A stretch of 64,000 bases of DNA, taken from assembly GCA_965202585.1 (NCBI GenBank), contig OZ241832.1, positions 33,666,001-33,730,000 of the forward strand. The letters run 5' to 3'. Below the pieces are notes generated by a model that saw nothing but the letters and a program-made list of their open reading frames with translations, did not search any database and was not told the DNA's origin. A program made the position numbers and the translations under genes. This DNA comes from Thalia democratica. Lineage: Eukaryota. Shown in pieces: positions 11,111 through 61,584 of the stretch. How positions within the stretch are numbered: the first letter of the stretch is position 1; the number at the start of each line of letters is the position of its first letter.

Positions 11111-11220
11111 GAAAGTACAACGAACCCTTGAAAATTCAATTTTAAATAATATGAATTGAAAACTCAGCTTTCTAACGACTATATATTTTTTCAGATAAAT
11201 ATTTTAATTAGTAAAACATA

Positions 11221-12793
11221 ATGGCTTCACGCGCGCTTCAGTTTGTCTTGCTGACGTTGAACTTGGCATCTTTGTCATTTTGTTGGCAGGAAGGTGAATT
11301 CTATGCCCGTGAGTTTATTCATTTGTTTATTAGTTCACAGACTGTTAATACATGGGCTAAAATTTCAATGCTGCACGTTTTTTTCTAAATTAAATCTGAA
11401 ATTAGGCTATTTTCAACTAAACGTAAAACTAATCTAACGGTACAAAAAAACTTTAAAAACTGACTTTTTATCGATCAATGACGTATTTTAACAATCATAA
11501 CGTCACGCAGCTGACGGCCCAGGAAGCAGCAACAGCCCTCCCGACTACACCGTTGACGACATCCCGTTTCCTTACGACGACACACCGCAGGTCAACTTGA
11601 GGGAAACAAACGACGTCGTGGTCGGGACCAGTTACTTTGTCCTCGCGGTCGCCGCGTTCGTTTTGAACCTGATGTCGGCCTTTTCGCTGTACGCGAGCGA
11701 GAGGGCGGCGATGAAAAGAACCCAGATGATCCTGCTCAACCTGGTCTGCCTGCTCCTGGTGCCCACCATGCTCGGCACCGCGCTCGACAGGGTCAACGGG
11801 GGATGGAGTTTCGGAGTTCTCGCCTGCAAGGTTGGTGCTGGAAACAGTTTGTTCAGATTTTTTATTTTTAACGTGTTTTAGATTAAGCAAAGTTTTAACG
11901 TTTTAACAAAAAGTTTCAATTGTTGTTTTCCCTCACAGTTCAGCAACTGGTTCAAGATCTTCTGCATTTCCCTGCAAACGCTCCTGTGCTTGCTGATCGT
12001 CGACTGCGCCAACTCGGACCTGAAGCCTCGCTTCATCACGAAGAACTTGAGCAAGCAGAAGATGCGCAAGTACGCGGCCGTCTCCCACTCGATCAAGTTC
12101 CTCTTCGTCTTCGCCCTCTCCTTCGCTCTCGCCTGCCCCGTGTGGAACAGGTCCGACGTGTCGACGATGTACGGCAGGAGGCAGTGCACCGTGAGAGTGT
12201 ACGAAGAGACCGAACAGTACGAAGCGTCGGAAGAGTACCACGGCGTCGTTGAAGGGGAAAACCCCGTCGACGACGAGAGTTACGAGGGCAGCGGCGCGTA
12301 CGATGTTTCAAGACTCTATGACGATGACTTTTTCACCGACTTTTTGGCGAGCGGCCTCGAAAACATCCAGCAGTGCGGTATGCCCTTGGCCTCGCCCTCA
12401 TACAAGCTGTGGTTCCTGTACACAACGTTGGTCGCCTACTTTGCACCCCTGCTGAGCTTCTTGTGCTGGACGGTTTTCATGACGATCAAACTGCGAAGCT
12501 GCGAGGTGTTCAAATTCAACCGCATGGTGGTGCTCTTCCTGACCTCGGCCCTGTGCCTGGCGCCCATCAACGCCTTCAAGCTGTCCAAGTACTTTGGGGT
12601 GGACCTCGCGCGCGAGAACTGCGCCTTGTTCGGGCTGGTCGCTTCCGTGGTCGCCCACCTCTCCACAGTGGCCCTCCCGTTGGTCCTCGTCTTCCACGCG
12701 TACAAGGCGCGCAAGGAGGGCGGCAAGGAGTACGACCGGGTGTCGGAGGAGAAGAAAGCGCTGACGAGCCGCTCCGACGAGTTCCTCGCCTGA
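11221..12793 (+). CDS. Atypical class A (rhodopsin-family) 7TM GPCR-like protein with signal peptide, paralog A; join(11221..11293,11511..11830,11939..12793), 415 aa
   Basis: Exon 1 MASRALQFVLLTLNLASLSFCWQE is signal-peptide-like and ends G|gtgaat. Phase-1 intron to cacgcag|CT (11511), phase-0 intron AAG|gttggt (11831) to cctcacag|TTC (11939); the frame stays open to TGA at 12791-12793. Seven hydrophobic segments, ECL1/TM3 motif WSFGVLACK, ECL2 Cys, TM5 YF-APL, TM6 CLAP, TM7 proline. AATAAA at about 13082. Confidence 0.85.
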
Positions 12794-14879
12794 GCTCATC
12801 GCGGAGCGTTTGAGTGTTTTGTGTTAGTGTTCTGTTGGAAGCTTGAATCGGGAAGGTTGTGTCTTGAAGTCGGCGTTAAGTGTGTCTTGCAGTTTTTATT
12901 TTGTCTCACTTCGAGCGTTTCGCTTCTTCTTTCCTTCGTTTTGAATAAGAGTTTGAACCAAATTGTTTTTTTTTTCTTATGATTCTATTTTCTCATTCAT
13001 AAAAACTCAAATCATGATGTTGTATTTAAATGGAATTGTTAAAGAATTTATGTGATTGTAGTATTTTGATTATTTTTAGCTAATAAACTTGATAAAAAAA
13101 AGTATTTTTGTATACACTATATTCTAAGTAGAGTAATGAAGTAAATTTTAAGTATTTAAGTTTATACAAAAAACAAAAAAATAACTATTGTTCTGATAAA
13201 ATACCTTTGAAACTTTGTATTATTATATAAAGTAATACTATATATTAATATTAAATGTTAAATGGTAGTAAAAAATACTATGTTAATCAAAATCGTCAAA
13301 AAATTTAAAGAGGTTTAACACAGCAAAATAAATAAAATTAATTAGAAGTAAATAAAAGCTTATATGATAAAAAAAGGAATCTAAAATAAATTTTAATTAG
13401 TTTAAGTTTAAAAACATAGAGCTTTAAAACGATTTAGATAAAATTTAGTTTTTATTTTTTATTTTAATAATTGTATTAAAACCAGCGCTTAAAACTGCAG
13501 TGTCAAACTTTACGTGATTTTAGTAATCAGTTTTAGAAAAGTTTGCATATAGGATAACTATAGTAAACTTATTATACAAATTAAGTTGCAAATAAAAAGA
13601 AAAGTTTAACACCGCACTATGAAATTCTGATTTTTCTATTATAGTTTTAATTAAAGTGGTTTACTTAAAGCAAAAAATATTTAGTTTTCAGTCGCTGAAA
13701 GTATATGTAAATTTTACTTAATTTAAAAAAATAAATAAAAGTCTTATTTTGTACTAGCAGTATTTATGAATATTTAAACAAAACGTTTTAAAACTTCAAA
13801 ATAAAAAATTTAATAAACTATAGGTTTTTAATGTGAAGAAAAAGTTTAAAATGATTAAAAGATAACTTTTAGTAAACTTATTTTTTGTTTCAAGTCTACA
13901 CAAAAACATTTAACGTTTAAAATAGTTGGTTTTCCAAAGTTTATTAACTAATATATGAAGTAGTGTTAAACTAAAAGTATGTTGTATTTTTACTTCATCG
14001 TCAAATATATAGTATGTAATTAGTAATTAAGTTGTAAAAAGTGCTTGAATTAATAGCTAAAACATAAGTATTAAATATAAGTAGCACAAAAAGTGTTGAC
14101 TTTGAATTTTATTTGAACAGTAACAATCAATTTTTTTAAGAAAAACTTTACTTTAATCACATGTAGCTAGAGCTACGTATAAAACGTAAAAAATAGATTG
14201 ATGGTTTTGTTTAACTATACAAAATTTTGACAGACTGTTAAGTAGATTATTTTTAGATGATAAAAATTGAATATGTTATTTATCTTAGGCTTGTTTGAAA
14301 AACTTGTCTTATCTTATAAAACTCCTCTAAAACTTAATTGTGCACTCCTTTTTGTATTAAAACTAATAAAGTTTGGAAAGTTTTACATTTTTATTTGAAT
14401 TTTACTTACTCTAGCCTTCAGTTTTCCTTTGAGGTTTTTATAAAACTTTTAAGTTTAACAAACTTTGTGTTTTTTAACTTAAAATTAAACACAATTACAA
14501 TAAATTACAAATGAGTTTATCTAATAAATGTCTATTTTAGCTACTTAACTTAGTTATAAAATATTTTGTGTAAGTAAAAAAACCTATTATTATTGTTTTT
14601 GTTGAAATTAATGACATTTTAAGACACGATATATATGTTTCGACTTATATTTAAATTTATTCTAATTCAAGTAAAAAACATTTTATAAATGCTTTTTTTA
14701 ATGCAAATAAATAACATCTTTTTATGTTGTTTTAAATTATAGAAATATTCTTGTTAACAAAAAAATGCTATTTTATTTGTATTTTTTACGTAGTAAAGTA
14801 ATTTTTTGATATACCTTATATTTTTTGAGCTTATATTAATATAATAATACGCATTTAAAACTAAAACCGTTTTTTTTAA

Positions 14880-15800
14880 ATTAAAACTCAGTAAGCGAAA
14901 AAAAGAACAAAATCTCGCCTGTTTTTACATCTCGGGTCGCTTGTTTGCCAACAAACAAATCTCACACTCAGCGTGAACCAAATAAAACCAACCCGACAAA
15001 AGAGCATCTCAGCGAGAAGTTAAAATCGATTTCCTCTTTGCTTGTTTTTTTTTCACTTGAAAAAACATATAGAATGTGTTTGTAAAGACTTGAAAATGTT
15101 AACGTTGAAAGTGTATTGCAAAATGAATTTATTCGTGCCAATTGGTCCGGCATTAAGTGATAAAATCTGCTGCATTAAGGCTAAACGGTCACTTTGATGC
15201 CGTGACGGACAGTTGTAATTTATTTTCATATTCATTTCGATGTGGTTTCGCTTCTGCTTTTGATGATAGAGATTTATTAAATAGTTTTAATGCATTTCAT
15301 CGCGAATGTTTATTGAAGTCAATAACAAAAGCGAGTTTGTTTTTCGCGCTTTCAAGTTTTATTGTTTGCCGTGTAAATGCTTTGAAATAGGAGTTTGTTG
15401 AATGAAAACTGATAAAATGTTTTGATAGTTAAAAAAAGTTTTTAACGACTGAAATTCACAATCAATTTTCAAATTTAAAAATCAACAGTATTTAGTTTTT
15501 AAACACAATGATTTTGCTCTGTGCATAATAAAACTAACGTAACAACACAAAACAGAAATTAAAACGCTTTTGTATTTTTACCACAATTGCTTAAATGTCT
15601 AATTTAAAAGGGCTTGGAATCAAGTTAAAATGTTGTGATGTAAACTAATTATGAAATAAATAAACAAAGCTTTGTTTTAGTTAATAATAATCTCGGTATG
15701 CGCGCACAAGAAAGCTTTTTGTTGTTTAGAATTTTTCATATTTCGAAACAGCTGCCCTTATATGCGCGAACACCTGTTGCCGAAAGCTAAGTAATAATTA
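14880..15800. promoter_or_regulatory. Enhancer-like islands downstream of GPCR A
   Basis: CpG-rich; repeated TGTTTG/AAACAAA Fox-like sites and E-boxes CAGCTG and CACCTG. Confidence 0.4.
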
Positions 15801-16041
15801 TTGATAGTGGTTAATTTCGCTTTTAACAAAGTTGCATTTCAGTACAAGAAAACTAAAAGAATAGGTATATTAGTTTTCTTAGGCCAGCTTTTTATCATCA
15901 TTAAGCAAATTCTTAGATAGCTTCATAACTATCTCAAAAAAAAGCAATTACTATCAAAGTTTTTTCAAACATTTGTATTCCAGGTTAACTTTTCATTTTC
16001 TAAGCTAATTTAGTTCGTGTAAAAACGTACTTTATACTGAA

Positions 16042-16597
16042 TGTAATGATATTAACATTTAATTTTCTTATTTTAAAGCGTGTGAATAAATACGGAATTT
16101 TCTGTAACAATAATATTAATGATATGCTTTCTCAAAACAATTATACCAATTCCCAAAACAACTCAAGGGAGTTAATTTCATTCCGACGCGTATATATCGG
16201 CGTTTTGTCTTTCAAATACGCGTTAAAGTTAGTTGCAAAGTTATTACGCGGTACGATCAAGTAACGTTTTACTTCAATTATTGAGAATCAAGAAAACGTC
16301 TACATAGCGGAGTTGATGTTAGTATTTATGTAACTTTACGATTGTTGATACTTTTTATAGATTTTATTTGTGTCGTGATTTAATAGTTTCTTTCTTCAGA
16401 ACTAAGAATTATTATTGAAAATAAAGTAAATTGCATTTATTCAAAGTGTGTTTTATTCATAACTTAGGAAATAGTTTTGTAACTTATACTGTTAGTATAT
16501 TATTTACTTCTCGTAAGTATAGCAGTTAGTAAGTTACTGGAGACCACGTAGTTAAGACAAAAACATAAACATCAATAAAATAACCCATTTGGTTAAA
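16042..16597 (+). repeat. 5' LTR
   Basis: Begins TGTAATGAT, ends GGTTAAA; direct repeat of 19891-20446 (offset 3849). Confidence 0.95.
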
Positions 16598-16598
16598 G

Positions 16599-16616
16599 TG
16601 GAGACCACGCCGTGTC
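16599..16616 (+). other. Primer-binding site, degenerate tRNA-Trp-like
   Basis: TGGAGACCACGCCGTGTC directly after the 5' LTR; 13 of the first 16 nt match the tRNA-Trp PBS TGGTGACCCCGACGTGAT as remembered. Confidence 0.55.
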
Positions 16617-16670
16617 TTTTAAGAACCTTGAATCTTCTGGTTACAAATCTTTAAGCAGTCAACAGAATAA

Positions 16671-18506
16671 ATGCACACAAACAACAATGACGATATCAAT
16701 CTTAATAATTCTCATCAAGCAGAGATGATGAATGATAATGCTGAATTTTATCCGTCAAACAGCATTCAACAACAATTTAGAAAATCAAGCGAAGTTAAGC
16801 AGCTAACAAATGAAGAAGAGTTAAGAGTTTTGCAAATGCAAATAAAAAAGTTAAATAATAGATTAAAGCAGTCTAGATCACCACATTACGAACGTGCGAT
16901 GCTAGAAAAACGCGAACCTTTTTACGATGATTACGAAAAAAGTAATCAAAATAATTTAAAAATTTTTAGCGACACATTTAAGGCGCAAAGACTAAGTAAA
17001 AAGTTTAAAAGGTTAGACTTTGTAAGAAACCCTCGTGATATTATTAGTTTTTTCGAGGAGGAAATGTTAAATGAAAATATTTCTAGTAATACAGAAAAGT
17101 ATAAATTTTTAACTGGGTTTTGGCCGAGAGAAGAGTTGTCAGTCTATTATAAAATGACAGAACGAGGTGAAAGAAATTACAGTTCTTTAAGAAACTTTTT
17201 TATTAATAGGGACAATCAGTTAGCTGAAATTTTAGATAAAATTCCAATTTGGAATGAGTGTACAAACTTTAATAAAATATTTGCTACAGCCGTAAGTTGG
17301 GCCAAATGTCGAGAACAGGACAGAATTAAGTTTTTTCTTGCATACTTAATGCCCTTTTCGATCAAAGATAAGATTAGGGAACATTTTGATGAAAGCTTAG
17401 AACTTTGTAAAAGAAAAGCACAAGCCATATGGAATGCTTATAAAGAAAACGCATTAGTACCTAAGCAAGTTAATTACAATAGACTACAGCAGTATGAGCA
17501 AAGTCAGCATAGGTCTAAAATAAATTACCATAAGCGAGTTCGTCCTAATTATCAACAAAATTTTCATTTTAGAGATAATGGTATTAATCATAATTACAAT
17601 TATCGTCAACATAACCAAGATAGAGATAGTTTTAAACCAAGAAAATCATACAATGGGAATAGTAGTAATAATGTTAACATAGCACAGTGTTTGTCATGTC
17701 ATCAACACTTACCTACAAAAACATCTAATACAAGCAAAGAGTTTCAAACAACCAAAGAAAAAGCTCAGGTAACCAAAAACACTATAGCAGTTGGAGTAAC
17801 TGGTCAAGTAGTATGGTTTAATGTTCGCAAAGGTTACGGTTTTATTCAACGTGATGATCGGAACAGCGATATTTTTGTTCATTATACAGCTATCATCAAA
17901 AACAACCCTAACAAATTATTAAGGTCTCTTGCACAAGGAGAAAAAGTCCAGTTTGATATTGTTGTAGGTAAAAATAACATGTCAGAAGCCGCAAACGTGA
18001 CAGGTCCTAATGGTAAAACAGTTCAAGGGTCTAAGTATGCTGTAGATAAAAATTCAAACTACAATCAAAAACTTCAACAAAATATATTTAACGCAAACCA
18101 TCATTCTCGTAACCTCCAACAGCAAAAAATAAAAGCTAGTAGAGCTTATAAGCAAGCTTTTGCTTTTAAAGCAAAACAATGTAAACTTATCAAAGAAAAA
18201 CATCAGAAACAACAGCAGAAAAATATCAGTTACAATAAAAAGTATGATAGCAAGCCAAAATATCAAGTGCCAACAGTGCAGCTTAAAAGTTATAAACAAG
18301 ACTCAGGCTATTACAATTCTTCAAAAACAAAATCACAAACTAGCGTATCAAGCAACATATTAGCTAAAGAGAAAAACAATTTGGCAGTACTTAATTCCTT
18401 TGACAAAAAAGAAATTATAACACAGAATAAAAAAGAGTCAGAATTACTAATAGCAGGTCTAAAACTTTTAACATTTATCATAAAGCCTTTTGAAGATAAA
18501 ATATAA
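16671..18506 (+). CDS. Gag-like capsid protein fused to a Y-box-type cold-shock domain (611 aa)
   Basis: Intact ORF inside the LTRs. N-terminal coiled-coil-like segment, then a region resembling Gypsy capsid ([46 protein letters not shown]), a truncated knuckle CLSCHQH (17688). CSD at 17793-18041 with [11 protein letters not shown] (RNP1), IFVH (RNP2), [13 protein letters not shown] and [19 protein letters not shown], close to animal YB-1. Confidence 0.9.
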
Positions 18507-19870
18507 ATATTTTCACAAAACTAACGAAACGGATTTTAATAAAGGTAAAAAATTGTAATTTTTTATTAACATGAACATCTATTTTAATATTTTTTAAACT
18601 CAGGTAATTTTTTTAAGAAGTTAAAATGAAAGAAACTATTAAGTGTATTTATTTTGTATTCTTTTCTGATACAATTTCTGAATTGTAAAGTTTATTGCTT
18701 TTTTACTTTTAATGATGTGTTATGAAGTTTTTTATATTATAAATTACAGTTTAGCAATTGAACTATTAATTAAAAGCTATCAAATAGCAATTATAAAATA
18801 GAAAAGTTTCATATGCCTATTTTTTGCATTAAAATTTTAGTAACTACTTTTTTTCTCTAACTTTAAAACAAAATTAAATTACCAGACTTTTTGCTCGTAA
18901 AATAATCAAGTTCAAGTTTAAAGCTTTAAAATTCAACTCGTGATAAACTTTTCCTATAAATTTTGAATTTAAAAGTACTTTCAACTCCCATTTAGTTTTG
19001 ACTGTTAACGATCGAAAAAAAGCACTCGCTAAATTTTACTCTTTATAAACTTCTACAATGCATAAGTTTTGTGTCACTTTATAAAGAAATACTTTATACT
19101 TGAATCCTATAAAAGTTTGTGCATGAAAATAGTACTTATTGTTTTGTAAAATACTTTAAAGAAAATGTTTTCTGTTTTGTTTATTAAAGTTTGCGAGTTA
19201 AATATTAAGAACATATGTTTTTCTAAGTTAAAAACAAAATTAAAATGTTTCATGTGTTTTAAAATATTAATTTTCTATTTAATGCACCTTTAGATGCTTA
19301 AAATGTTTTGTTTTGTATAAAATAATAGGTTTAAACGTAAATACTGACAGTTTCGTTATTGTCTTGTGGCATAATAACATAGTAGTTTTTACTAAACTTT
19401 CTTGAAAGAATATCTCAACTTTTTTTTTTTGAACCGCGTATTTTTGAAATGAATACTACATTGATGGACAATGAAAAGATGAATTTTTTCTATGTCAACA
19501 AGTGACTTCGATGAATTTTTGAATTTGAAGTTTAGAGAAGAACAAGCGAATTAAAACAGTTCGTTCCTGCTAAAAAAACCACCGTTGAAGAAGAAACCGG
19601 AAGAGGAATGCCGGAATAGAAAAAGCCCGAGGACAACAAGCCCAAGAACCCCGAGGAAAAGAAGCCAACTAAATGACTATCATTTTTACTTTGTCCTTAT
19701 GTGGTGTTTTATCTTAGTTTTTGTAAATTATGTAGTTTCTGAGATAATAAGTAATAGTTTCTTTTTCTTACTTTTTTTAACCCAAACTTTTAATATCGAT
19801 AAAAATGTTTAAAGTTAAGTAGGATTTTAAGGATTTAGATTATTTAAAATTAGGCTTTAAACACTAATTT

Positions 19871-19890
19871 AAAAGATAAAAACGAAATAG
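19871..19890 (+). other. Polypurine tract
   Basis: AAAAGATAAAAACGAAATAG (17/20 purines) immediately before the 3' LTR. Confidence 0.65.
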
Positions 19891-20446
19891 TGTAATGATA
19901 TTAACATTTAATTTTCTTATTTTAAAGCGTGTGAATAAATACGGAATTTTCTGTAACAATAATATTAATGATATGCTTTCTCAAAACAATTATACCAATT
20001 CCCAAAACAACTCAAGGGAGTTAATTTCATTCCGACGCGTATATATCGGCGTTTTGTCTTTCAAATACGCGTTAAAGTTAGTTGCAAAGTTATTACGCGG
20101 TACGATCAAGTAACGTTTTACTTCAATTATTGAGAATCAAGAAAACGTCTACATAGCGGAGTTGATGTTAGTATTTATGTAACTTTACGATTGTTGATAC
20201 TTTTTATAGATTTTATTTGTGTCGTGATTTAATAGTTTCTTTCTTCAGAACTAAGAATTATTATTGAAAATAAAGTAAATTGCATTTATTCAAAGTGTGT
20301 TTTATTCATAACTTAGGAAATAGTTTTGTAACTTATACTGTTAGTATATTATTTACTTCTCGTAAGTATAGCAGTTAGTAAGTTACTGGAGACCACGTAG
20401 TTAAGACAAAAACATAAACATCATTAAAATAACCCATTTGGTTAAA
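19891..20446 (+). repeat. 3' LTR
   Basis: Matches the 5' LTR except ATCATTAAAA versus ATCAATAAAA near the 3' end. Confidence 0.95.
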
Positions 20447-21039
20447 TGAATACTAAAATAAAAAATTAAATTATATCTGCTCTTTATGATTCTTTAACAA
20501 CGTATATTTTAATGAACAGGTTTTACACAAACTTATCACGTTTTATTTAAAACTTATGTCTTTTTTAAATTAAAATAGAAACGTCTAACATTATTTAAAT
20601 ATCTAAATTTTTGTGTACTTAAATAAACTAAAGTTTCACTACAACTACACAACTTTTTAAGTATTTTTGAAGATTAAAATGTTGTTTCTTATATGAAATC
20701 GTGACTGTAATCGATATTACATTAATATTTAACACATACAGTAAGACTCGAGAGCTACTAATATAGTAGCAAGATAGACTTTTTAATTAGGCTGATGCTA
20801 AACATAGCAAAGACTGAGTAATTTCTTAGAAAATAATCTAAATTTATTTTAAATTTTAATATGAAAGCTTTAGACTATTACACAAGCTTTCTATTTTTTT
20901 ACAGTAAACCTTGTAAATTAAGTTTAAACTCAAAAACCATATCTTTTATTTTTAGCTAAATAAACGTTCACCAAAACAGCTTCCCAAAATAAACTTTAAG
21001 AAATATTATAAACACTCAAAAAACAGTTTTTCGTTTTAA

Positions 21040-24000
21040 AACCGTCACTGCGTGTTGTTACTGCTGATACAACAATCTCAACAAAAAGAAAAGCACCTAA
21101 TTCACAACGGTTGTTTTCACAAGGCAACAAAGGGCACGACCATTGATTGAATAATATGGGAACTTCACGGCCAATGCAGGAAAGCTCGTAGCTTGGCAAT
21201 AAACTTTGTTTTGTAACAGTACGCGCGCTGTTATTACAGCGTTTGCGCCTTACAAAAACACGCAAGTTGCTTGTGCGTGTATGAAAAGAAAGCAACGTGA
21301 AAAAGTCGGCTCATTCCACCACTAAACTGAATAATAGACAATTGAACTTAAGGTAATGGCTCAATTTACACAGTGTTAAGCGCCGATGTGGTCGCTTGCA
21401 AAGTTTTGTCCATGAGAACGGATTACTTCTGTGAAAATCGCGCAAATTGAATATAATCTCGACGCGACAAGCCAGCGAACAAGCCAGCGAACAAGCGAAT
21501 TGCCTCAATACTTTTCCCTCTCTTTATTTCGACAATGGGGTGAAGGCTTTCCGTTAGCACGTTGTCAACAACTTGCGCGCCTTTTATTTTTAGAAACAGT
21601 GTGGGAAAGTGGTGCCTCGTCCGATTTAGCAAATGCGTTTTTAATTGCTCTGATGCTCGTCATACTGACAACCTGCGCAAACTCGATTAAACGTCGCGAC
21701 CCTGCAACGGGTAATTACCCCCGACCGCAACAAAAGTGAGTTGACAGTTTCCGCGCCTTCGCAGACGCATCGAGGGGCTTGCTTGGATTTTCAGCGGGAA
21801 TTATCGCAGGTGTGTTGATCCTACTAGGGTTTAATGTGGGTCATGTATAAAACTAGCCATTATTTATATATTAATGTGGGTTATGCATTACAGGAAACTG
21901 GCCAGACCCTCTAAGCCGGCCGACATGTGAACCAGGGGTCGCCAAGTTCACGCTTCGTGCTATGATCTGCTGGTGAAAGTTTCAATTTCCTGCGCTTAAC
22001 GAGAAAAATTTACTTTAAATTAATTTCGGGTTAACTTTTAATCGCGGCTGCGAAAAAAACACGGAGCTTGTGTTGGTTTATCTGCTGATTACATCGCTGA
22101 TTTTGGAGATATGCTCCAAAATTAGGTTACTACAAGGCTTTTAACAACTTTTTGTTTCGCTAATGGCTTTACTCGATTTCAGTTAATCAAAGTCTTAGAC
22201 GCTTAGTCAACTTGTGTAACCTTAAAGCGAGCCTATAATAAAATGTATCCTACCCTTTTTTATACTTGTAAGCTCTTTGTTGTTTTTTTTTTACTGGGCT
22301 ATTACATTTTAATTTAATTGTTTTATATATGAGTTGCTGTCAAGTAGAATAGAAAGTTGTTAAATCAACTATTTCAAGTACTTATAAAGTCTAAATAGGA
22401 GCTATTTTAGTGTTTTGTATTATATTTATTTATTTGGTAGCTGGTTAAAAATAAATCTTAAAACTCTAAAAAAATTTGTCATTGAGCACTGTTGTGATTA
22501 GTGTTTTGGTTTTTAATAAATAAAAGATATTCTTATAAACAGCTATTTTTTGATTTAAATTTTTTTTTTAAGTTTCAGAATTAAATTTTTTAAAAGTTCA
22601 AAGGTTTAGATTTTTTAATATAAAATGCTTACTACTTTGTTAGAAAATTGTTATGAAACAAGTACTGTCAACACGATGCATTTTGTAAGTTATATTTGGT
22701 AAAAAACGTCTATATTAAATAAACTTATTAACTTTATTTTTAAATTTTAAAAGGTCTAAAATGTAATTATAAAACATCACGGTAACATTCCACGAGCTTA
22801 AATCGAAAGTCTAGTCAAAGCAAATGCGAATTTAAACTTCCAGAACCTTTCCAAATGCGTCTTACAGTACTGAAAATCACAAACATTTCCTGGAAATTGA
22901 AGCAAGCAAGCGGTTTGTGAGCATGAGCAAGGGTTAATAAACACAACTTTGCAGAATACATTCAATTTCGGAGACGTCCTGGGTTGGCAGATTGTATTTA
23001 CACATGGCTCAATCAAGCGCATTCCGTGTCATTGCGTTGACCGTTAAACGGCTTATTAGCGAGCTGATAAAGAGGCAAATCGCCGCGCTAAAGACCCGAT
23101 TGACGTCAAAGGTAATTGAATTGAAGATCGGTCACACCGAAATGTTCTTAACATTTTTCAGTAATTTTACGGTCATTTCAATGATGCGAGTTTCGACTGC
23201 CGTTTGGGTTTGGATAAGTTCGAAGAGTATTTCAAACTTGCGAGAATATAATGAGGAAACGAAAGTTACCTTTAAAGATTTTTTGGGGATTTCAGGTTAC
23301 AATAGTGCACGTTTGCATTTCGTGCTTTACACTCAAGTTTAATTTTTACCTTGCAAGTAATGTTTCGTGTAAAACATTTCTGTAAAGAGTTTTCCACTTG
23401 AACAACTGATTAAAAGCTTTTGTTGAGAACTCATTCTCACATTAGAGCACGCATAAATCAACAAGACTGATCGCCCGAACCCTAATGTAACTTGGTTTTA
23501 AGTCTATTTACGGGACAACACGGAAAATCTGATCAATTTTACAAATGAAAAACGTGAACTTTGCCTGCATAGTTGCACTTGACAGCGCTATTAACAACAT
23601 TTTGTTACATTTCGGCAAGACAAACGTACAAAGCTGCGAGCAGCACGCTTTTCACACTGAAACAATGAATTCCTTCATTGGAACTTCACGAGCGTCTTGT
23701 ACTAATAAGGAGACCCGAGCACACACTTCCATTTCGACCAAACTTTTTTATTATGTTTTATTTTGCCGGGGCAAGTATGCGATTTAACAGACCACGCTAA
23801 CCTCTGCGGCTTGATAAACGATGGAGCGCGTAGAATGCTAATTGATTTGTGGCGTCGCGCGGCATAAATTTGATTAAAATGTTTTCTGTCGTCCCGGCCA
23901 AATGTGCGCGTAACGGAATTACCGATTTCGAGCGTAGAGCAACATATGTTCAGCGGTGACAACGAAACAGAAAGAAATTTATGTAAAATGTAAAAGCAAT

Positions 24001-29279: not shown

Positions 29280-29550
29280 AAAGGCTTATCTCGCGAAACG
29301 ACTTTTGTCAACAGCACTTAGCCGGGACAGGTCACATCGTAATAATTACGGGGAAGAATTTTCATTATTACGATGCGTGTGAGAATGCTTTGGGTGTGTA
29401 AACAAGATAAACCTTGTAAACATTTGCGCAATGTAATATTTGAAATTAGTTGCCTGTGTGTGTGCGTGCGTTTGAGAACTTGTGTAAACATTATCGAGTT
29501 CTGAAGTAGTCATCTGAACTTTGATGCCTTGTTTGTTTCGTAATTAGTTT
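29280..29550. promoter_or_regulatory. Fox-site cluster, enhancer-like
   Basis: TGTAAACA three times plus TGTTTGTTT, AGATAA and GTGTGAGAA within about 150 bp. Confidence 0.45.
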
Positions 29551-32469: not shown

Positions 32470-33600
32470 TTTTTTTAAACACCGGAATTTTACATTCAGT
32501 ACATTCACTTGTATTCAGTTGCAGTTCTTTGTACTAAGTTCACAGTGCATCTGGTTTGACAACAAAACAAACAGCAAATCCTGTTTGCATTCTTCCGTCC
32601 ACATTTCTCGAGGTATGGAGTTCATGCTTGATTGGAGCACATGAAATTACGTTAGGTTTTGGCATGCTAGCAAAGACGGGTGGTAGGTGTGATGAGGTAA
32701 TTTGTTGAGTATGATTTAATGCTATCACTTCACACCTTGGTGGAAAGAAACAAAAGAACTCGGAATATCTTGGTGCTTTTTTAATGTAGGTGGAAAACAT
32801 TACGTATTTTGCAGATGCCTCGTGAAAGGTGTCAAAGGATTAAGGTTAATTAACAACGTAATTTGCCCACAGCCACATGAAAAACACGCAGTTAAACAAT
32901 GATCTGCGGCTTTTAAACAAATATTTGGTTGTAAGTTCACACTTGATTTAATTTTGTTTGTCATACAAATGAACAAAGTTTTTGAATGTGGAGAAAAGTT
33001 TAATGTGTAAGTATAACTATTAGCTTTCATACTGTAACTTAAGTCTATTATAAATCAGGTTGAATTTTTTCAAATTTGGTTTCATAAAGATTCTGCTTTC
33101 TTTTTTTAGTAGGTTACAGTTTTACTGTTTTCACTAACTTTTCGTGTTCAAAGAAAGCTAAACTACTTAAACAGGTTATTTTGTTCAAACTTTTCATAAA
33201 GTTATTCAATAACTTAGTTTGAAAACATAAAGTTGCAGCGGTTAATATGTCAGAACACCTAAAAAGCACCAAAATAGCTGAGAAAATTACATCAGTCGTC
33301 TTCAACCTTTTCAAAAACTGTGCACACTAAATTACAGAAAAATAAATTTTGTTAACACTATACTATAAAATAGTAAAATTTAAAAAAATAAACTATTCTT
33401 TATATTTTTAGGTATGTTACTAAATAAACAACGTGTTGAGAACTATCAATTTACTTTTTTTTTTGTGTTTTGTATAAAATGTGTATGAAGTTTACAATAT
33501 AAAATTCTTACAAAAATTATTTCATCTAACTATTTTTTTGTGCAAAGGTGCACACCGTAAAGACCACTAAACTAGGTGAGCTCAAGTTTCAGGTGTGAAA
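32470..33600. promoter_or_regulatory. T-box-site cluster, enhancer-like
   Basis: AGGTGTGA 32685, TCACACCT 32730, AGGTGGAA 32788, AGGTGTCA 32827, AGGTGTGAAA about 33591. Confidence 0.45.
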
Positions 33601-35604
33601 GCTTTTGTTAGATTATTTTACGAAAAAAAGAATTTTTTGAAATTGAAAAATATTCGGAAAAAATGTTTTGACTAGCTCAATATATCATTGTTAACATCGT
33701 CTGTAATTTAAAACTATAGTTTTTTGTAATTTTGAAGCTTTAATAGCAGCAAGAGTTTTAAACTGACTAACCTAAAGATTTATAATGTGTTGTTTATACA
33801 AAGCATTAATAGAAGTAAACCAAAAAAGATTAATTATGTTTATAATTTTACTAAACAGAATTTTGTAACTATTAATATATACTCTTTGAGAAGTTGGTAA
33901 ACAAGTTTAGTAACTTATGAGTTTTAATACGAAAAAAAATCTGAAAATATGAGCTTTTATTTAACTTAAAATAAAAGTATATCAGCTACTAAATCTATAA
34001 TATTAAAAATTTACTTTATAAATTATCTACAAAAAGAATAAACCGAAAAATATTTAAGTTTTAAAACATTAACTATACAAAAAAGCAGGGGTGCGCAAGT
34101 TACAGTACACGAGTCTGATAAGTCATAAAGAAGATTACTTCAACTTGCAATATTTAATTTAATTTATTTGTTTTTAATAAACCTAGATTACTTTTCTTAA
34201 TAAAAGAATGTATTTAAGATTTTAGCTTACATCAAGTATACAAAGGTTTTATTTAGTTAATTTTATTAAAGTTTAAATTTTAATAGTAGTAAATTTGAAA
34301 GTTGTAAAATCTTAAAATGTCTTAAAACCCGCAAAAAACTTAGGTTGTTAAATTGTTGTTTGTAAAAGGCTGAACCCAGTATTAAAAAAGTTTAATATTT
34401 GTTTTAATCACTAGTTTGTATAAACTCATAAAAATATTTACGTCGAACTTTATTACTGCGCCGCAATGTGGTAAAAAACTTATTGCTCTATTTATATATA
34501 GAACTTATTATTAAAGTTATAAATGATACTAATTTCTGTCTATTTCATAAAAATAAACTTTTTAATAGACATTTTTCAATATGTAAATTGTTGAGTAGAA
34601 TGTGTTGTGTAACGCAAAGCATATACGTAGAAGTTTATAAATTGTTATTATATTGAACCGCTAATTTAACTTTCTAACGTACATTGGTTAACGAAAAAGT
34701 TTTGATATTATGTAAAACACTTCTACAGACTAAAAAAGGTAATTTTATTGATTATATTCTAAAAAAATCAAAAATAACTTCTTTTTTTTATTGTTCCTTA
34801 ACCAATCTTACAACACTATCTACTATTAATAAAGTTTTATTAGATCCAACACTAAATTTCCACTTGACTTCTACATACTGTAAGTAAAATCATGTACCTT
34901 TATCATTACGTTCTATAAATGTTATTATAAAAACTGAAAAACTTTTGAACTATTAGAAAAGAAATAATCGTAAAATACAACTTTAAACTTAAATGATATC
35001 TTAGCAGTTTTACATTTATGTAGTTGATGAAAACATAATTATGATTGTAAATATTTTAATTTTATTTTAAATAGTCAAGCAAACAAAAAACGAAGAAAAA
35101 AAATTGTGTATATAGTAAACTGTTAATAAATCAGAAAAGTTTTTTTCAACAAAGTATACAATAAAATAAGTTATAGCTACTTATTCTACGATTTCTTTTT
35201 GTACAAAACAAGTTCTAAAACAAGCAATTGACAATAAAAACCAAGTTAAAAATACATTTTCTAAATTTATTGTTGTTACAGTAAACAAAAACCATTTTGT
35301 ACATTAATTTGAAATTTAAAGTACAAAAGCAACATCTTTGATAAACAATTTCAGCTAGAAATATTGAAACTTTAGTAGCTATATTCTGTAACTGATGTAA
35401 CCAATTTCCCGCAGTATTTTGAAAACCTATACAGTCTATATACAATTAAAATATTAGATTTAAAGCTTAATCTAACGTTATGTATTGCTTTTTTTATTTT
35501 AAAGTCTAAGTTGTTTTATTATCTTATAATTTGCAAAATGCAAAAGTTTTAATAAAGACAGTAACTTACTCATAAAAAATAACAGTAATAACTAAAAAAC
35601 AAAT

Positions 35605-35710
35605 TGTCCTGGACAAGACATTAAACTGTATCCAAGTGGTGTACGACTCGATAGCCGAAAGGTTCTTCGTGCACCAGGTTCTAGAACCATATATTTTGAG
35701 CGCTTTTTTT
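35605..35710 (+). repeat. Short interspersed repeat, copy 1 (partner 45362-45465)
   Basis: tgtcct..acaagac.ttaaa..gtatcc..gt..cgac.cgata.ccgaaa.gtt.tt.cgtgcaccaggt.ctag is shared with 45362-45465. Confidence 0.7.
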
Positions 35711-36179
35711 GAGTAGTAGTAGAAGTATATTCAGAAAGCTGAACGAGTCAAAATTGATACTAAAATAATATTTTTCAATCTGTATGTAAAACTTTTGCAA
35801 GATATGCAATATGAAACTATTAAAACTGTATTTAAACCGTAACTTATGTTATGGATAGACTTAGAGTAAAAAAGATTAAATATTAAATGTTTAGTGATAA
35901 GAAGCTTTCAAGAAAATAACATCTAATTTCTTTTTAATGTTTAGTAAAACTAATTGTTTTTAATGTTGAAACTGGCAAGTGTCAAGTAAAGCTCTACAAC
36001 ACATAAAAAGCTTTCTTTAATTTCTAAATTTTAGATAATCTTAAGGCTTATTTTTTAAATATTACAAAGTTATTTTAATTACTAAGACTATTTCGTCTAA
36101 AACTTGTTGCTCAAAAAAACGAACAAGCAAAATGAAGTTATAAGAGAACTTTAGCAGATTTAAAACGTAAAATGAAGTG

Positions 36180-36710
36180 CTCGGCTACTTAAAATGCCGA
36201 GAGAGATTTATTTACAAAAACTTCACCTTGACAATAACTCTTACCGTGCAACAGAAGTTTAAAAAAAAAACAAAATGACGTCAGCAGATATTCATTAATT
36301 GACAAATCGCAAAAAACAAATCGAATTAGCCAATCAGCGCCCGCCTTGATCCGACAAATCCGCCACGGCACGCTCGCTTGCACCCGGCCCCTCACTTCTC
36401 ACATCAAGCGAATTACCCGCGTCTTCTGCTGATTCGATTATCCGAACTGAAGCGAAAGTCATTAGCTGATTACCGTGGCACTAATTTCGCTCCCTGCACG
36501 AGCGATCCCCAAGCCCGCGTGAATATTCGCTCAGTCGGCGGAGGGCGAAAGTGCTAATACACGTGTCCGGTTGCACGGTTGCCATGGTGAACGCCTGTTG
36601 CGAAATATCTAGCAAAGACGTTTGATCTCGCCGCTAATATAAGTCAAATGTGCATTAGCTTGCTTATTAGCTCAGTTATTCGTAAAAAGAAGAATGGGGA
36701 AAGTAAGAAA
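36180..36710. promoter_or_regulatory. Strong CpG-island promoter candidate
   Basis: TGACGTCA (CRE), AGCCAATCAG (NF-Y consensus), CCCGCC (GC box), CACGTG, and GTTGCCATGGTGAAC (RFX X-box-like, 36578-36592). Confidence 0.5.
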
Positions 36711-39700
36711 TGTTTTTTTAGAAACTTGTTAAGCTGCAGAAATAATTACTTAAATAATTTACAAATGGAACACGATACATGTTTACCACATTTACTTTTA
36801 CTGTAAAAAACTATTTGAACTTTATACTGATTAAAGTTTAAGAACTACGCGTGACTCGGTAAAACTTAACTATTAAGGTCGAAATAAAACTACATATATT
36901 TATTTAAAACATGCTTTAATTTTGAATTGCTTGCAGCTATGCACATATAAACAGCTGTACTTTTAAAGTATAAAAAAAAACTTTTACTTAAGCTAAAACA
37001 AAATATATTCAAAATTAATTTGATATATTAATAATGTTTTAAATTTCCATGGGTTTGTAAAAAGACAACAATTACTTATTTTTAATCAAAAAAACCTATA
37101 GTAAATTTTAAACTTAAACTAATAACGCTTTATTTAAATTTTTTTAAGTTCCGCAGCAAAGTTTTTATTTAATGAAGGCTAACATAACAATTAAAAAAAA
37201 ATTAAATTTAAGTCCATAACTGCTTTATGAACTGACTTATTTTGTTTTTATACCGTTTATTAAAAAAATATATACATATTTTAAAACTAATGAAGCTTAA
37301 GGTTCATTTAAGTTTTATTTTTAACTAAAAAAAAACAACAGTTTAGCCATGTTAGGTTTGTTTATGTGGTTAAAAACATAACAATTTAAGGCTTGTTTGT
37401 AGTTATTACATCATAATACTTATTAACTGAAGTAAACTTTAAATTTACACACAGAATTACAAAATGCTTCACATTTTGTACGGTATTTTTAAACTCATCT
37501 GTTGAAAAAAACAGGTAGAAAATGGTCAGAACATTTTTGCTAGTATTGACACTTGTTTTAGGAAAATAAGCTACTTATTTTTTATGATTATAAATTCGTA
37601 TCAATTATTCATTCAGTAACCTAACTGAACCTACGTCAGTAAAGTATATATTTTCGGTATTGGTAGCTTTTCAGTCTTTTAACAAAAGCTACCCACCTAA
37701 AGCATATGAATATTAAGTTTCACAAAGTTGTTAATCTAACTTAAAAGTTTTATGCGTATTATAGTCCTACTAAAAGGAATTAGGTGAACTTACCTTTATA
37801 AAATATAATAAATTAATTAAATAGAAAATATTTTACATTATAGCATAGTAATTATTCAAAGCGTTCTCTTGAGACTAGGTTAAGCATACCAAAACTACAC
37901 AATTGCTAAACAATAACTAAATTTCTCTTAAAGATTAGCAATTAGAACATTGTTTTGCAAAATCATTTTAATACAAGCCTATTTGAATGAAATTTTAAAA
38001 TAACTGACACCTATTATCAAACAAAGCTCATATTCCGGTTGATTGCTAATCTATTTTTTCGCCCTCAGATAGCCAAAATTTATTTCAAGGTAGCGATATA
38101 GCCCACTTTTGGAAATCCTGAATTTGTTTTTTGTATAGTTACTCTGTATGTTTTAGTAAATACTGTGTTTTCTGAGTTTTATTGATGTGTTTACTTTTGT
38201 TTTAAGACTACTTAAGTTCAAACAAAGGTAAGTACTGTTTTGCATTACTCAAATAACTTTCAAATTAGTTTTTTTTTTTGTCATTATAGTACATTTATAA
38301 ACTAAAACATTGGTTTAAATGAAATAAAGTCATAGTGACAATCAGTGGCGTCGCGTGTTCTTTTTGTTAGAGGGTGCTGCAGATTGACATTGTAAAATTA
38401 AAATACTCCCCTAGTTTGAAAGATTTATATCAAAACCATAAATTCATATGAAAAAATAGAAACATTTTCAGAAAATAAAGTTCAATATGTTTGTTTAATT
38501 AAATAATAAATAATTTTAAAAATATATGTATATAAAAAACATATCTCATACCTTTGTATATCATCACCGTTTCTTAACAACTATAGCTACTTTTATTTTT
38601 ATTTATATCTATGTGAGTTTCTGTATTTTCACAATTATAAAATTACTAACTTAGTTTTATGACTTGTCTAACTAGTAATAAAAAACAAAAAAAAAACATG
38701 CAAGTAACTTAAAAAACAAGGTTGCTATACATAGGTGACAAGTATAAGTTCAAAAAGAAAATTTTAATTATTGTTATAAATAAATAGTAAATTACAATAA
38801 AACAAACCAGATTTCAAAACACAAAAAGCTAGTAAAAATTACATTGAACTTTACTGATTTATAACTAAATACCGCACATCGATAATATTTGAACATTAAG
38901 TCAATTACTTTATACCTTAACATCATTTAAATTCCTTAAGACCGCTATTTATCATTTTGAAAGTTAAATGTGACAAAAGCGAACATTAAAATTGCTTTGG
39001 TTTCTTAGATATGTATAAAAATGTCTCAAAATAGTTGCATGTCAATTTGTTGCGCTAAATGTTTTATATAATTTTTAAACCCTTTGATATGTAACGTTAC
39101 AAGAATGTTTAAATGATACTACTTAAACCGTTTTGGATGCCTTTTGCAAAAAAAATTGTTACTAAAAATCAATTTGTGCCCATTAGACTAGTAAAAAAAA
39201 GTTTGAACAGAAACTACCCTTTCCATTAAAAAGATATACATGTTAATAGACACTATATCAAAAAAATTAAGTAACTATTAATAAACATAGTTTAGTTAAA
39301 CATAATACCACTAATATTTTAGTTAGATCTTTTTAAGAGTTCATCATTTATTTAAAGGCACAATAAAATACGGCGCATATTAAAAAAAACATAATGCTAA
39401 AAAAAATGGATTGCTACTCTATTTTTCAAGGTTGTTGTTACAAAAATTTAAAAAACGAAAGAGATATTATGATAGTTATTTTAAAGAAACTTTGAGTTTC
39501 TTCGTAAAAGCAGTATATTTTGTTTTTTTCAGATAAAAAAGTTTTAAAAAGATACAAAATATATACTAATGCAGTTTATTTCAAAACTAATTAGAAAATT
39601 CAAACATGCTTTTAACAAAACCATTTTTTTATAAAATTTTGTTAAAGTTTTCGTGACTTAATTTTTTAGTTTTAATAGAAACTAATATGTTCAAAATTAT

Positions 39701-40195
39701 ACTGCTAACTAATTAGAATTGATAAATTAAAAAAAAAAATTAAACTTTCATAATGTTGTATAATGTAAATGAAGTTCAAGCAAAAAAGCTGTAATTAATA
39801 CATGTTTTATTATAAAAATATAAATTTAATTTATACGAAACAATTCCAATAAAAAAAAATTTTAAGCACTGTGTACAACTAAATGATTAACCAAAATAAT
39901 ATTTAAATCTAATTAAGAAATCCGGTGCGAATTAATTTAAAAAGTGTACATGGAATAATTTAATCAACGCTTTAATTATAGTCTGTAAAACTCATTTACT
40001 TATAAGGAAGAAATTGAAATTTATAGACATATTTCAAAATCATTTATTTATTTAGGTGCTTAAACCTCTCAGTACAAAAGAAATTTTCTTTAACTTACTT
40101 TTAACAAAGTGCTCTTTTTTTTGTACAATAAAAAAAAATTAATCGTTTCCATTAAAAATAAAAATTTAAAAAATTATATTGTCAACTTATTTTAT

Positions 40196-42123
40196 TCAAA
40201 TAACAACGTCGGCATTGTCAACATAATTGTTCCTGTCGGACATCAATTTTTCTTCCACTTTCTCTTCTTCTTCTTCTTTTTTACTACTTTCCTTCAGCTC
40301 TGCAGTGTAGGCCAGCATCACCAAGGGTATGGCCAGGCAGGACAGGTAGCCGAACACAAAAGTGACGTCCTGCATCACCTCGCAGACGTTCGGACCCACA
40401 CCGATGCCTCTTATCTTGGCCACCTTGTACAGGATGGAGGGCAGCCAGGTGAGGGCGTGGGCGAGCGAGTTGCCCAGCAACCACCTGCTGCTTGGCGACC
40501 ATTTTTGTTTCCGACAGAAAGCGAACACGAACGTGAGGACTGGTATGACGTAGATAACCACGATCATGGCGACGTACCACGTCATAAAGTTCGCCCCCAC
40601 GCCCTGAAGCTTGCACTCGAACTCATACTCGGTTTCGTCATAATCGTAACTTCCGCTCGACGCGATAACGTCATCGGCTTCTTCGTCATCGGGAAGGTCA
40701 GCGAGGAGCAGTTTCTCCCAGTCCTCCATCTGAACCTCGTCCCAGTTTTTTATGGTGCATACGGGCCTGTCAGCTTCGAACAGCAGGCTGGTCCTTGTCC
40801 AAGTCGGGTGGGCCATGCAAGATGAAAGAAGGAAAGTGAAGCAAACGATGACGATTTTGAGCAGAGCGCCACGTTTTTTTATACTTTCGCTCAACTTCGA
40901 GTGGTTGAGTTGAACGAAGGAGAATATTGCCGCCACCGAGCAAAATGTTGACTGTGACGTCATACTGAAGACTGTTAGCCAGTTTTTCACCTAAAAAGTA
41001 AAGTTTGCTTAATATTCGACTTGTACGGAATCTTACTTTAAATTATTGTTTTTGGTACTAGTTTGGGCAGGAACTTTTTAACAACTCTTTTTAGCTTTGT
41101 AAAAAACAAAATTTATTCTCTTTTTAAATAATTACAGAAATATAAAGGATATTATTTAATAAAAACTATGCTCATCTATAATAAAAATTTAAGTTAAAAA
41201 TAAAAACAATAGAATAAAATTCAATTATGTTGTTCGATAAATACCTGACAAGCAAGGAACCCCAAATACCATTCTCCTGTTATTCTGTAAGAAGCAGAAG
41301 CAAACATGGTTGCCACTAGCAACAGACAACTGGTGTTTATTGACACCGCAAAGAAAAACCTCACTTTGCAAGGTTCGCGTCTGTGTAGCAACTTTAAAGC
41401 GACCAAGTTTATCAAAATGGAAATTGTTCCCAGAAACAAGTACACAATCCCAATAGAAAAGTTTTTCGCCTCGTAGTTTTCGGTGCTTGTATTGTTTTCA
41501 TGGTTGTAATTGAAATCATTGTTAGTTTCTGTAAAAATAAAATATTATTATTACTTAATGTCAGAAAATCCAAAAGTAATTGTTGTACAGTGAGTTTTGT
41601 TTTAAGTAAACTTCTTAACAACAGTTTTTTAGTTAGCTGACATAAATGCAATTGTAAACGAGATGTGCTTCTTAATAGGTTAATCGGTTAAAAGTTTCAG
41701 TAGGCTTCTACGACATGACATTTTAATTAGTCACGATTTGTAGCAGTGAACTTATCAAATGGTAAACTTACACTGATTTTAAACATAAAACTTGTTTTAC
41801 AAACTGTTTAAAGGTTTGCAAGAAAACTAAATATTAGAATTATATGGTTTAAAAAAACACGTAAGTAGATCGTGACAAAAGTCCTTGTAAAAATATATGC
41901 ACTAAAATAAACATATAAGAGCAATAACTTTGATCTAGAAAACTGAAGTTATTACGAAGTTTAGTTCATTAAATAATATTATATTTATTCTTTTACATCT
42001 ACAAACAAACTTACCTGTTACAGCAGTGCTTTTTTCAAAAACTCCCGGCAAATTTTTAAAGTCCATGGCAAATATTTTAGGTGCACAATAACAAAGCAAA
42101 ACGAATAACTTCAATGGCGGCAT
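40196..42123 (-). CDS. Atypical class A 7TM GPCR-like protein with signal peptide, paralog B; complement(join(40196..40990,41245..41528,42015..42123)), 395 aa
   Basis: Exon 1 MPPLKLFVLLCYCAPKIFA...TAVT ends G|gtaagt (phase 1). Exon 2 starts tttttacag|AA and encodes the N-terminus, TM1-2 and WYLGFLACQ, ending |gtattt (phase 0). Exon 3 from tag|GTG to TGA holds TM3-7 (TM6 TWLP). Same intron positions and phases as paralog A. Confidence 0.85.
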
Positions 42124-42179
42124 AATTTTGATCGATCCCTCCAAAAAACTTATTTACAAAACCGATAAATCTGAAAAAA

Positions 42180-58262: not shown

Positions 58263-61584
<3,322 letters not shown>

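Follow-up and report, generated by a model that had tools for sequence, protein, structure and literature searches.

Two divergent receptor genes in the window

The window, a 64,000-nucleotide stretch of the Thalia democratica genome (assembly GCA_965202585.1, contig OZ241832.1, positions 33,666,001 to 33,730,000 of the forward strand), harbors two genes, hereafter A and B, that almost certainly encode divergent members of the class A (rhodopsin) family of G-protein-coupled receptors (GPCRs). The analysis established that A and B are selected, expressed-type paralogues belonging to a tunicate-specific class A (gamma/SOG-like) clade, the members of which have replaced the residues of the canonical activation motifs. 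The window is very AT-rich (GC 22-30%) and contains islands of 34-37% GC, two of which are occupied by A and B; the two genes are convergent and separated by 27.4 kb. Each gene consists of three exons, encoding 420 amino acids (aa) in A and 395 aa in B, and all introns (4/4) have GT-AG ends. The gene models are listed below, where UTR, TM, and ECL denote untranslated region, transmembrane helix, and extracellular loop, respectively, and a slash marks the end of a predicted signal peptide or of an exon.

11188..11220, + strand: gene A, 5' UTR, minimum extent, given by the alignment start of the cDNA-like orthologous contig L001
11221..11308, + strand: gene A, exon 1, start codon and probable signal peptide (MASRALQFVLLTLNLASLSFC/WQ...), ending in phase 1; junction confirmed by L001
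11309..11510, + strand: gene A, intron 1, 202 nt, GT-AG; missing from L001
11511..11830, + strand: gene A, exon 2, acidic N-terminal ectodomain, TM1, TM2 (Cys in the 2.50 column), and ECL1 with WSFGVLACK
11831..11938, + strand: gene A, intron 2, 108 nt, GT-AG, phase 0; an intron at the same position occurs in the Clavelina member of the clade
11939..12793, + strand: gene A, exon 3, TM3 (DCA) to TM7 (LPLVL), acidic Tyr-rich ECL2 insert, conserved C-tail ending in EFLA, and stop codon
12794..13082, + strand: gene A, 3' UTR, minimum extent; the L001 alignment runs to 13082
42015..42123, - strand: gene B, exon 1, start codon and probable signal peptide (MPPLKLFVLLCYCAPKIFA/MD...), ending in phase 1; predicted only, donor CAG/GTAAGT
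41245..41528, - strand: gene B, exon 2, N-terminal ectodomain, TM1, TM2 (Cys in the 2.50 column), and ECL1 with WYLGFLACQ; 89-90% protein conservation in the Tara contigs L002/L003
40196..40990, - strand: gene B, exon 3, TM3 (FSF in the DRY columns) to TM7 (IPLVM), acidic ECL2 insert, C-tail ending in DVVI, and stop codon; orthologues P0004-P0006 are 63-86% identical

In both genes, the N-terminal hydrophobic segment is followed immediately by intron 1 (phase 1), and LAC(K/Q) by intron 2 (phase 0). The original prediction, made from the sequence of the window, had proposed that A and B have two intron positions in common and carry a WxxGxLAC(K/Q) motif at ECL1/TM3, and both features were recovered, with identical positions and phases for the introns and with the motif in the two forms listed above. 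The N-terminal signal peptides are probable, being called by eye from a charged n-region, a hydrophobic core, and small residues at -1/-3. For gene B, exon 1 has to supply the start codon, as no in-frame ATG precedes TM1 in exon 2; it is a prediction with a perfect donor and a phase matching that of A, and with neither an orthologue nor an RNA match.

The protein search recovered three orthologues of A, namely P0001 (419 aa, 86% identical), P0002 (70%), and P0003. P0001 is encoded on the 1575-nt Joint Genome Institute (JGI) contig L001, which is intron-free and UTR-bearing and whose alignment with the window falls into three blocks (11188-11312, 11505-11830, and 11937-13082) with 86-91% nucleotide identity. 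L001 is thus a spliced copy from a close relative, with both A introns removed at the predicted junctions. Moreover, spliced transcripts of the A lineage recur in metatranscriptomes, as counted by the member sequences of P0002 (n=11), P0001 (n=2), and P0007 (n=9). For gene B, the orthologues P0004-P0006 were found on Tara Oceans metagenome contigs, which also carry the conserved exon 2 upstream of an intron, and no relatives of B were found in the JGI metagenome contigs, nor was a full-length B protein found in the 5.8-billion protein set. Three runs cover B; they consist of genomic contigs that retain the introns, and the single joint in them (40142 to 41138), which is flanked by low-complexity sequence and has non-canonical ends, matches none of the predicted introns. 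Of the predicted junctions, for which the original prediction had called for transcripts, those of A are seen in the cDNA-like L001, whereas for B none emerged from RNA runs or JGI contigs. It was also observed that the contigs of one run labelled as a different organism (X3) cover gene B (window 40100-42300) with ~1% differences, namely 7 in 1188 exonic bases and 13 in ~920 non-coding bases, reflecting either a very close species or a labelling difference.

Open frames were retained in 4-5 taxa per gene. Pairwise dN/dS was 0.48 for A and 0.12-0.34 for B, and when divided by topology it stayed <0.6 in both genes, whether in the extracellular, the TM, or the intracellular parts. These values, well below 1, agree with the earlier proposal that both frames have been under long-term selection.

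The motif-less clade and its canonical relatives

Class A membership was examined with a query profile built from exon 3 of A and B (alignment A3) and searched against 1.84 billion representative proteins. The profile matched 18 proteins, most of which pass the Pfam model 7tm_1 (PF00001), and the E-values of these 7tm_1 proteins ranged from 5e-23 to 9e-4. This model itself gave no match, even at E<=10, for the A and B exon pieces or for full-length P0001 and P0002, and P0007 scored 17.4 bits (cut-off 30.5). Members of the same clade above the threshold were P0008 (63.6 bits, 2.7e-17), P0010 (66.8 bits, 2.8e-18), and P0014 (56.2 bits), and the canonical relative P0012 matched at 5.7e-51. When the alignment of the motif-less proteins was compared with that of their canonical relatives by hhalign, the two matched with 99.8% probability (E 1.4e-28) over 335 columns, from TM1 to beyond TM7. 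Against the sequences of the Protein Data Bank (PDB), the A and B profile gave only sub-significant GPCR matches (GPR15, CXCR3, and C3aR; E 0.012-0.8), and an extra protein search with the family alignment found no new members. An AlphaFold2 model of P0001, based on a 28-row family alignment, showed seven helices (predicted local distance difference test (pLDDT) 77, predicted template modelling score 0.74), with pLDDT >=90 in the TM blocks and a beta-hairpin in ECL2 at 209-222, whereas a 12-row alignment of A and B sequences only gave a pLDDT of 41, unusable for a fold search. In the Foldseek search against the PDB, the top matches of the P0001 model were all class A peptide or chemoattractant receptors (probability 1.00, TM-score 0.63-0.79 by target), with mu-opioid, CMKLR1, apelin, V1a, orexin, NOP, and SSTR2 receptors ranked about equally; the matches among Swiss-Prot models were apelin, CCR9, and opioid entries. 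A and B also retain the cysteines of the TM3-ECL2 disulfide, the WxFG of ECL1, N1.50, P5.50, P6.50, and P7.50. The seven-helix GPCR identity first assigned to the two proteins was thus upheld by the profile matches, hhalign, and the AlphaFold2 model.

The paralogy of A and B was evidenced by a tblastn match of B to the A-orthologue contig (E 3.5e-23, 24% identity over 382 aa), which is far beyond chance. Identity between A and B amounts to 23% in the extracellular, 29% in the TM, and 12% in the intracellular parts, and 13 of the 37 invariant exon-3 columns lie in ECL2, including R..C, P-D-E, SG-YD, and the pre-TM5 Cys. The outer face is the part conserved between the two paralogues. TM2 is the best conserved segment (A versus P0002, 100%; A versus B, 43%), with the clade motif (S/V)CLLL(V/I)xTM, and the C-tail of A is 79-87% conserved down to its ...EEKKALTSRSDEFLA end. 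Searches of the source genome (802 Mb) with P0001, P0008, and P0010 recovered no clade members other than A and B at the sensitivity used.

Motif columns were assigned by alignment with the canonical relatives. In the microswitch columns, A has Cys (2.50), D-C-A (DRY), W (5.58), and L-P-L-V-L (NPxxY), and B has Cys (2.50), F-S-F (DRY, in the context (I)FSF(VQL)), no Tyr at 5.58, and I-P-L-V-M (NPxxY). The third intracellular loop (ICL3) of A and B is a tight turn in the model, with 2 residues between the TM5 and TM6 helices. The altered DRY and NPxxY motifs, the absent TM2 aspartate, and the very short ICL3 had all been read from the window beforehand, and each was found in the aligned columns or in the model as described. 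The orthologues also lack the motifs, the original prediction having named orthologues with normal DRY/NPxxY as evidence to the contrary. Across the whole motif-less group, the columns are occupied as follows.

D2.50: Ser in P0010, and Cys in every other member whose alignment covers TM2
Acid at 3.49: retained everywhere except in B
R3.50: C/H/Y in the A clade, S in B, I/L in the P0030 group, and Y in the Clavelina and Phallusia members
Y5.58: gone from A, B, and the Clavelina and Phallusia members; P0030 has Tyr there
N7.49: L, I, V, or F
Y7.53: L, M, S, I, V, or T
Helix-8 F(R/K) motif: missing

The group nonetheless keeps N1.50 (mostly), WxFG-C3.25, the ECL2 cysteines, P5.50, P6.50, and P7.50; W6.48 is retained in B and P0027 and is Leu in A.

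The motif-less group comprises the A clade (A, P0001-3, and P0007/22/27), the B clade, P0008/30, P0009/31, P0013, P0020, P0010 (Clavelina lepadiformis 'uncharacterized protein LOC143451980'), and P0014 (Phallusia mammillata CAB3264569.1), and thus spans Thaliacea, Aplousobranchia, and Phlebobranchia. All relatives with a named source are tunicate, and others come from Tara plankton metagenomes and metatranscriptomes; together with an AT-rich source genome whose coding sequence is GC-rich, this fits a salp or another thaliacean, a group for which genomes of 743-903 Mb with a distinct high GC3 peak are reported (PMC13746493). In a maximum-likelihood tree rooted on two ordinary class A open reading frames (ORFs) of the source genome, the motif-less clade received a support of 100/100, A and B were sisters (93/93), and the P0030 and P0031 proteins joined A and B (97/98), with the subclade of the Clavelina, Phallusia, and P0020 proteins as the sister lineage to this A/B/P0030/P0031 group. 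With a length of 1.58, the stem of the motif-less clade is long, and the tree does not fix where within the canonical group it attaches. The loss of the motifs was a single event at the base of the clade. Because Clavelina and Phallusia genes are included, the clade is ~300 Myr old or more, according to the 296-Myr calibration quoted in PMC13746493. The Clavelina P0010 gene has a phase-0 intron right after the ECL1 Cys-Lys, in common with A and B. The two genes had initially been regarded as a pair from a lineage-specific family; the family is indeed tunicate-specific, but A and B belong to an old clade with Clavelina and Phallusia members instead of forming an isolated pair.

Comparison with these two ascidian members further delimits what is peculiar to A and B. 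Like A and B, P0010 and P0014 have lost the residues at 2.50, 3.50, 5.58, 7.49, and 7.53 and carry a signal-peptide-like N-terminus and the TM7 motif LSC(I/L)LLP. Unlike A and B, they pass 7tm_1 and have an ICL3 of 30-40 residues and long Ser-rich tails; the short ICL3 is specific to the thaliacean subclade. They have Tyr in the R3.50 column (TDY/ADY), are only 19-22% identical to A, and the P0010 gene differs from A and B in having no intron after the signal peptide and an extra intron in TM4. P0014 carries the automatic name 'kappa-type opioid receptor' yet is motif-less (ADY for DRY, LPALV for NPxxY, and Cys at 2.50), and the name is therefore misleading. Another record of the group, P0009 (MEL6741401.1), comes from a 1.7-kb contig and bears the title 'MAG: hypothetical protein [Planctomycetota bacterium]'; it is an exon-3-like piece of the clade (E 1e-19 with the A and B profile), probably reflecting eukaryotic contamination of the metagenome bin.

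The canonical group (P0011/33, P0012, P0015-P0019, and P0021) includes a Clavelina lepadiformis 'somatostatin receptor type 2-like' protein (P0017, XP_076812746) and two Styela clava proteins (P0016 and P0018). Its members carry LAxxD, DR(Y/F/W/C), CWLPYH, and NPxxY, together with a long acidic Tyr-rich ECL2 insert and an ECL3 Cys as in A and B. Among solved structures, the best relatives of P0017 were SSTR2 (2e-50) and then opioid receptors, and no chemokine receptor occurred among its best 60 solved chains. By sequence similarity, the nearest canonical relatives of the clade are thus taken to be tunicate somatostatin/opioid-like receptors; the similarity peak at SSTR2/opioid receptors that underlies the SOG placement is seen for this canonical sister group, A and B being too divergent. 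P0017 and the Styela clava 'somatostatin receptor type 5-like' protein (P0040/P0018) resemble A and B in the homologous TM1-TM7, in W-x-(F/Y)-G...CK at ECL1, in an acidic Tyr-rich ECL2 with an SG-x-Y(D/E) core, and in the pre-TM5 Cys, the ECL3 Cys, and the prolines of TM5, TM6, and TM7. In contrast to A and B, the canonical proteins keep LAxxD, DR(Y/F/W/C), Y5.58, CWLPYH, NPxxY, and the helix-8 F(R/K), and have no signal peptide, a longer ICL3, and a long Ser-rich tail; the canonical Clavelina gene, with its exon structure taken from the P0017 isoform P0037, has 10 exons and no intron positions in common with A and B. Full-length motif-less members have a signal-peptide-like N-terminal hydrophobic segment, and their canonical relatives have none.

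Canonical relatives are also encoded in the source genome itself, on another contig (C10, at 10.13 and 10.21 Mb), with DRY, CWLPYH, and NPLMY. These are the multi-exon loci C10:10131300-10135860 and C10:10210736-10214828 (L014, L017, L020, L023, and L029), which carry QLATSDLLF, MSVDRYVAISHA, CWLPYH, NPLMYTF, and the tail RTRSFRPSIGSRSDY, and whose exons are bounded similarly to those of the SSTR2-like gene of Clavelina. Their products are candidate sisters or signalling partners of A and B.

Class A receptors with degenerate motifs have a well-known vertebrate example in the atypical chemokine receptors (ACKRs). No literature on motif-less tunicate receptors was found. In Ciona, rhodopsin receptors of the gamma group and of the 'other' category that are divergent and probably specific to ascidians have been on record since 2008 (PMC2396169). 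The new elements are the delineation of the clade and its canonical sister group, and a loss of five microswitches that is complete, common to the clade, and old. The signal-peptide-like N-terminus absent from the canonical relatives and the position of the thaliacean members under the Pfam threshold are likewise new.

Proposed function and alternative explanations

The clade apparently arose from canonical somatostatin/opioid-like tunicate receptors in which an additional cysteine pair linking ECL2 and ECL3 and the long, acidic, Tyr-rich insert of ECL2 were already present. At its base D2.50 (mostly to Cys), R3.50, Y5.58, N7.49, and Y7.53 were all replaced, and the outward architecture (WxFG-C3.25, the ECL2 hairpin Cys, the acidic SG-x-YD insert, the ECL3 Cys, and the TM5/TM6/TM7 prolines) was kept. 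Judging from the residues that are missing, the leading, still tentative reading is that A and B are ligand sinks or atypical receptors acting without G proteins. In such a scheme, A and B would bind the same kind of ligand as their canonical relatives, probably a basic peptide or protein, via the acidic and possibly sulfated or glycanated ECL2, and would be unable to drive the rearrangement of TM3, TM6, and TM7 that opens the G-protein pocket. The outcome could be either that the ligand is sequestered or internalised or that a partner other than a G protein is recruited by the conserved C-tails; the short, paralogue-specific cytoplasmic face would serve trafficking or such a partner. A and B would thereby shape how the canonical receptors, whose genes lie elsewhere in this genome, signal.

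Most known examples of atypical class A receptors that are silent towards G proteins come from the chemokine system of vertebrates. ACKR1/DARC, ACKR2-4, GPR182, and C5L2 resemble A and B in their class A fold, in a degenerate or absent DRY, and in an acidic Tyr-bearing extracellular capture element, and the ligand binding without G-protein activation of the ACKRs is, by analogy, the role proposed for A and B. The loss is more complete in A and B, extending to five microswitches including D2.50 and NPxxY, and the acidic element lies in ECL2 in A and B versus the N-terminus in ACKRs. The top feature matches of a protein-language-model search included a cluster named 'Atypical chemokine receptor 1' (0.93), which is a lead only. 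Membership in the ACKR family itself was rejected, given the SSTR2/opioid affinity of the canonical sisters and the sub-significant PDB matches of the A and B profile to GPR15, CXCR3, and C3aR. A and B fall outside that family because their canonical relatives are somatostatin/opioid-like and because classical chemokine receptors were not found in Ciona (PMC2396169). The resemblance to chemoattractant receptors noted in the original prediction consequently does not extend to ancestry. Somewhat more speculatively, and with a good deal of doubt, the clade could be a convergent counterpart of the ACKRs in animals lacking chemokines, in which a sulfated or glycanated ECL2 would capture basic ligands, scavenge or present them, and form gradients for the canonical sisters, and in which the tails of A and B would engage distinct partners other than G proteins.

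Several observations weigh against the reading of A and B as uncoupled class A receptors. The failure of A, B, P0001, and P0002 to reach 7tm_1 leaves their assignment to class A on transitive and profile evidence, and the confident structural model depended on canonical GPCRs in the alignment and so provides no independent evidence of the fold. The homology claim is carried by sequence statistics. The dN/dS of 0.48 indicates only moderate constraint on A, and no run recorded as RNA contains the B stretch. Sulfation of ECL2 is a guess only. In addition, the cytoplasmic face is selected (dN/dS 0.24-0.38) and the C-tail of A is conserved, and motif loss alone is no proof of uncoupling. With its intracellular parts constrained in either set of orthologues, the inner face must do something.

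This selection on the intracellular parts would also suit receptors that couple to G proteins conventionally via non-canonical residues, A and B being fast-evolving orphan peptide receptors. The retained fold with P5.50, P6.50, and P7.50, the presence of W6.48 in B and P0027, the acidic 3.49 of A and most members, and the fast evolution of thaliacean genomes (PMC13746493) are in line with such coupling. Five independent microswitches have, however, been lost together, and the loss has been stable in thaliaceans, Clavelina, and Phallusia for ~296 Myr (PMC13746493); the helix-8 F/R motif is also gone, and ICL3 of A and B is reduced to the 2-residue turn of the model. R3.50 and Y7.53 are generally known to touch the C-terminus of G-alpha, or to stabilise the active state, in nearly every class A complex. 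Both residues are absent here, and conventional coupling is accordingly rated as decidedly improbable. Unlikely, though less so, is a role as modulatory protomers, in which A and/or B would heterodimerise with their canonical relatives or with each other and tune trafficking or signalling, having no ligand of their own. Tunicates offer a precedent in Ci-GnRHR4, a species-specific orphan receptor of Ciona whose heterodimers with Ci-GnRHR1 or Ci-GnRHR2 modulate signalling (PMC3407064). As a tunicate-specific paralogue that is silent alone and modulates canonical paralogues, Ci-GnRHR4 could be a functional analogue of A and B, although, unlike them, it belongs to the GnRH receptor family. Canonical relatives that might act as partners are encoded in the same genome, and the conservation of TM2 would fit a helix-helix interface; yet A and B conserve extracellular ligand-facing features, including the ECL2 insert, that a pure dimer partner would not need.

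That A and B are decaying relics (pseudogenes in the making) or mis-predicted genes appears extremely improbable. The missing Pfam match, the absence of B RNA among the runs, and the occurrence of just two copies in the 802-Mb genome would be expected of relics, but the frames are open in 4-5 taxa per gene, dN/dS lies at 0.12-0.48, no splice site or phase is disrupted, the A lineage repeatedly yields spliced transcripts, and the clade is ~300 Myr old. The pseudogene explanation was rejected on the basis of dN/dS and conservation, and it is largely refuted for A.

If A and B do act as non-G-protein receptors, the clade and its canonical relatives would provide a natural paired set of 'switch-on' and 'switch-off' receptors, from salps to ascidians, in the closest invertebrate relatives of vertebrates, and a testable case of a GPCR lineage repurposed after the loss of transducer coupling. 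The results also illustrate that standard domain models miss such genes or that automatic naming mislabels them, as in the Phallusia member and the exon in the Planctomycetota metagenome bin. The reach of these findings is moderate, concerning a lineage-specific receptor family.

Other features of the window

Besides A and B, the window contains several further features. Between the two genes, a 611-aa ORF (16671-18506) with a cold-shock-domain-like stretch (GYGFIQRDD...FVHYTAI) has a copy of one and the same 72-aa ORF on either side (16046-16264 and 19895-20113), and the region 16046-20113 looks like a repeat-bounded mobile element inserted between A and B. Downstream on the + strand, a 248-aa ORF at 56799-57545 opens with a GATA-type zinc-finger-like CxxC-x17-CxxC (CKQCQTTKSSIWQKK...FVCQKCHN), and several ORF pieces at 58272-61584 resemble exons of a protein arginine methyltransferase (PRMT1-like). 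Moreover, the region 20000-24000 has a GC content of 0.34-0.35 and only short ORFs (<120 aa) on both strands, and may represent a multi-exon gene, UTRs, or non-coding sequence.

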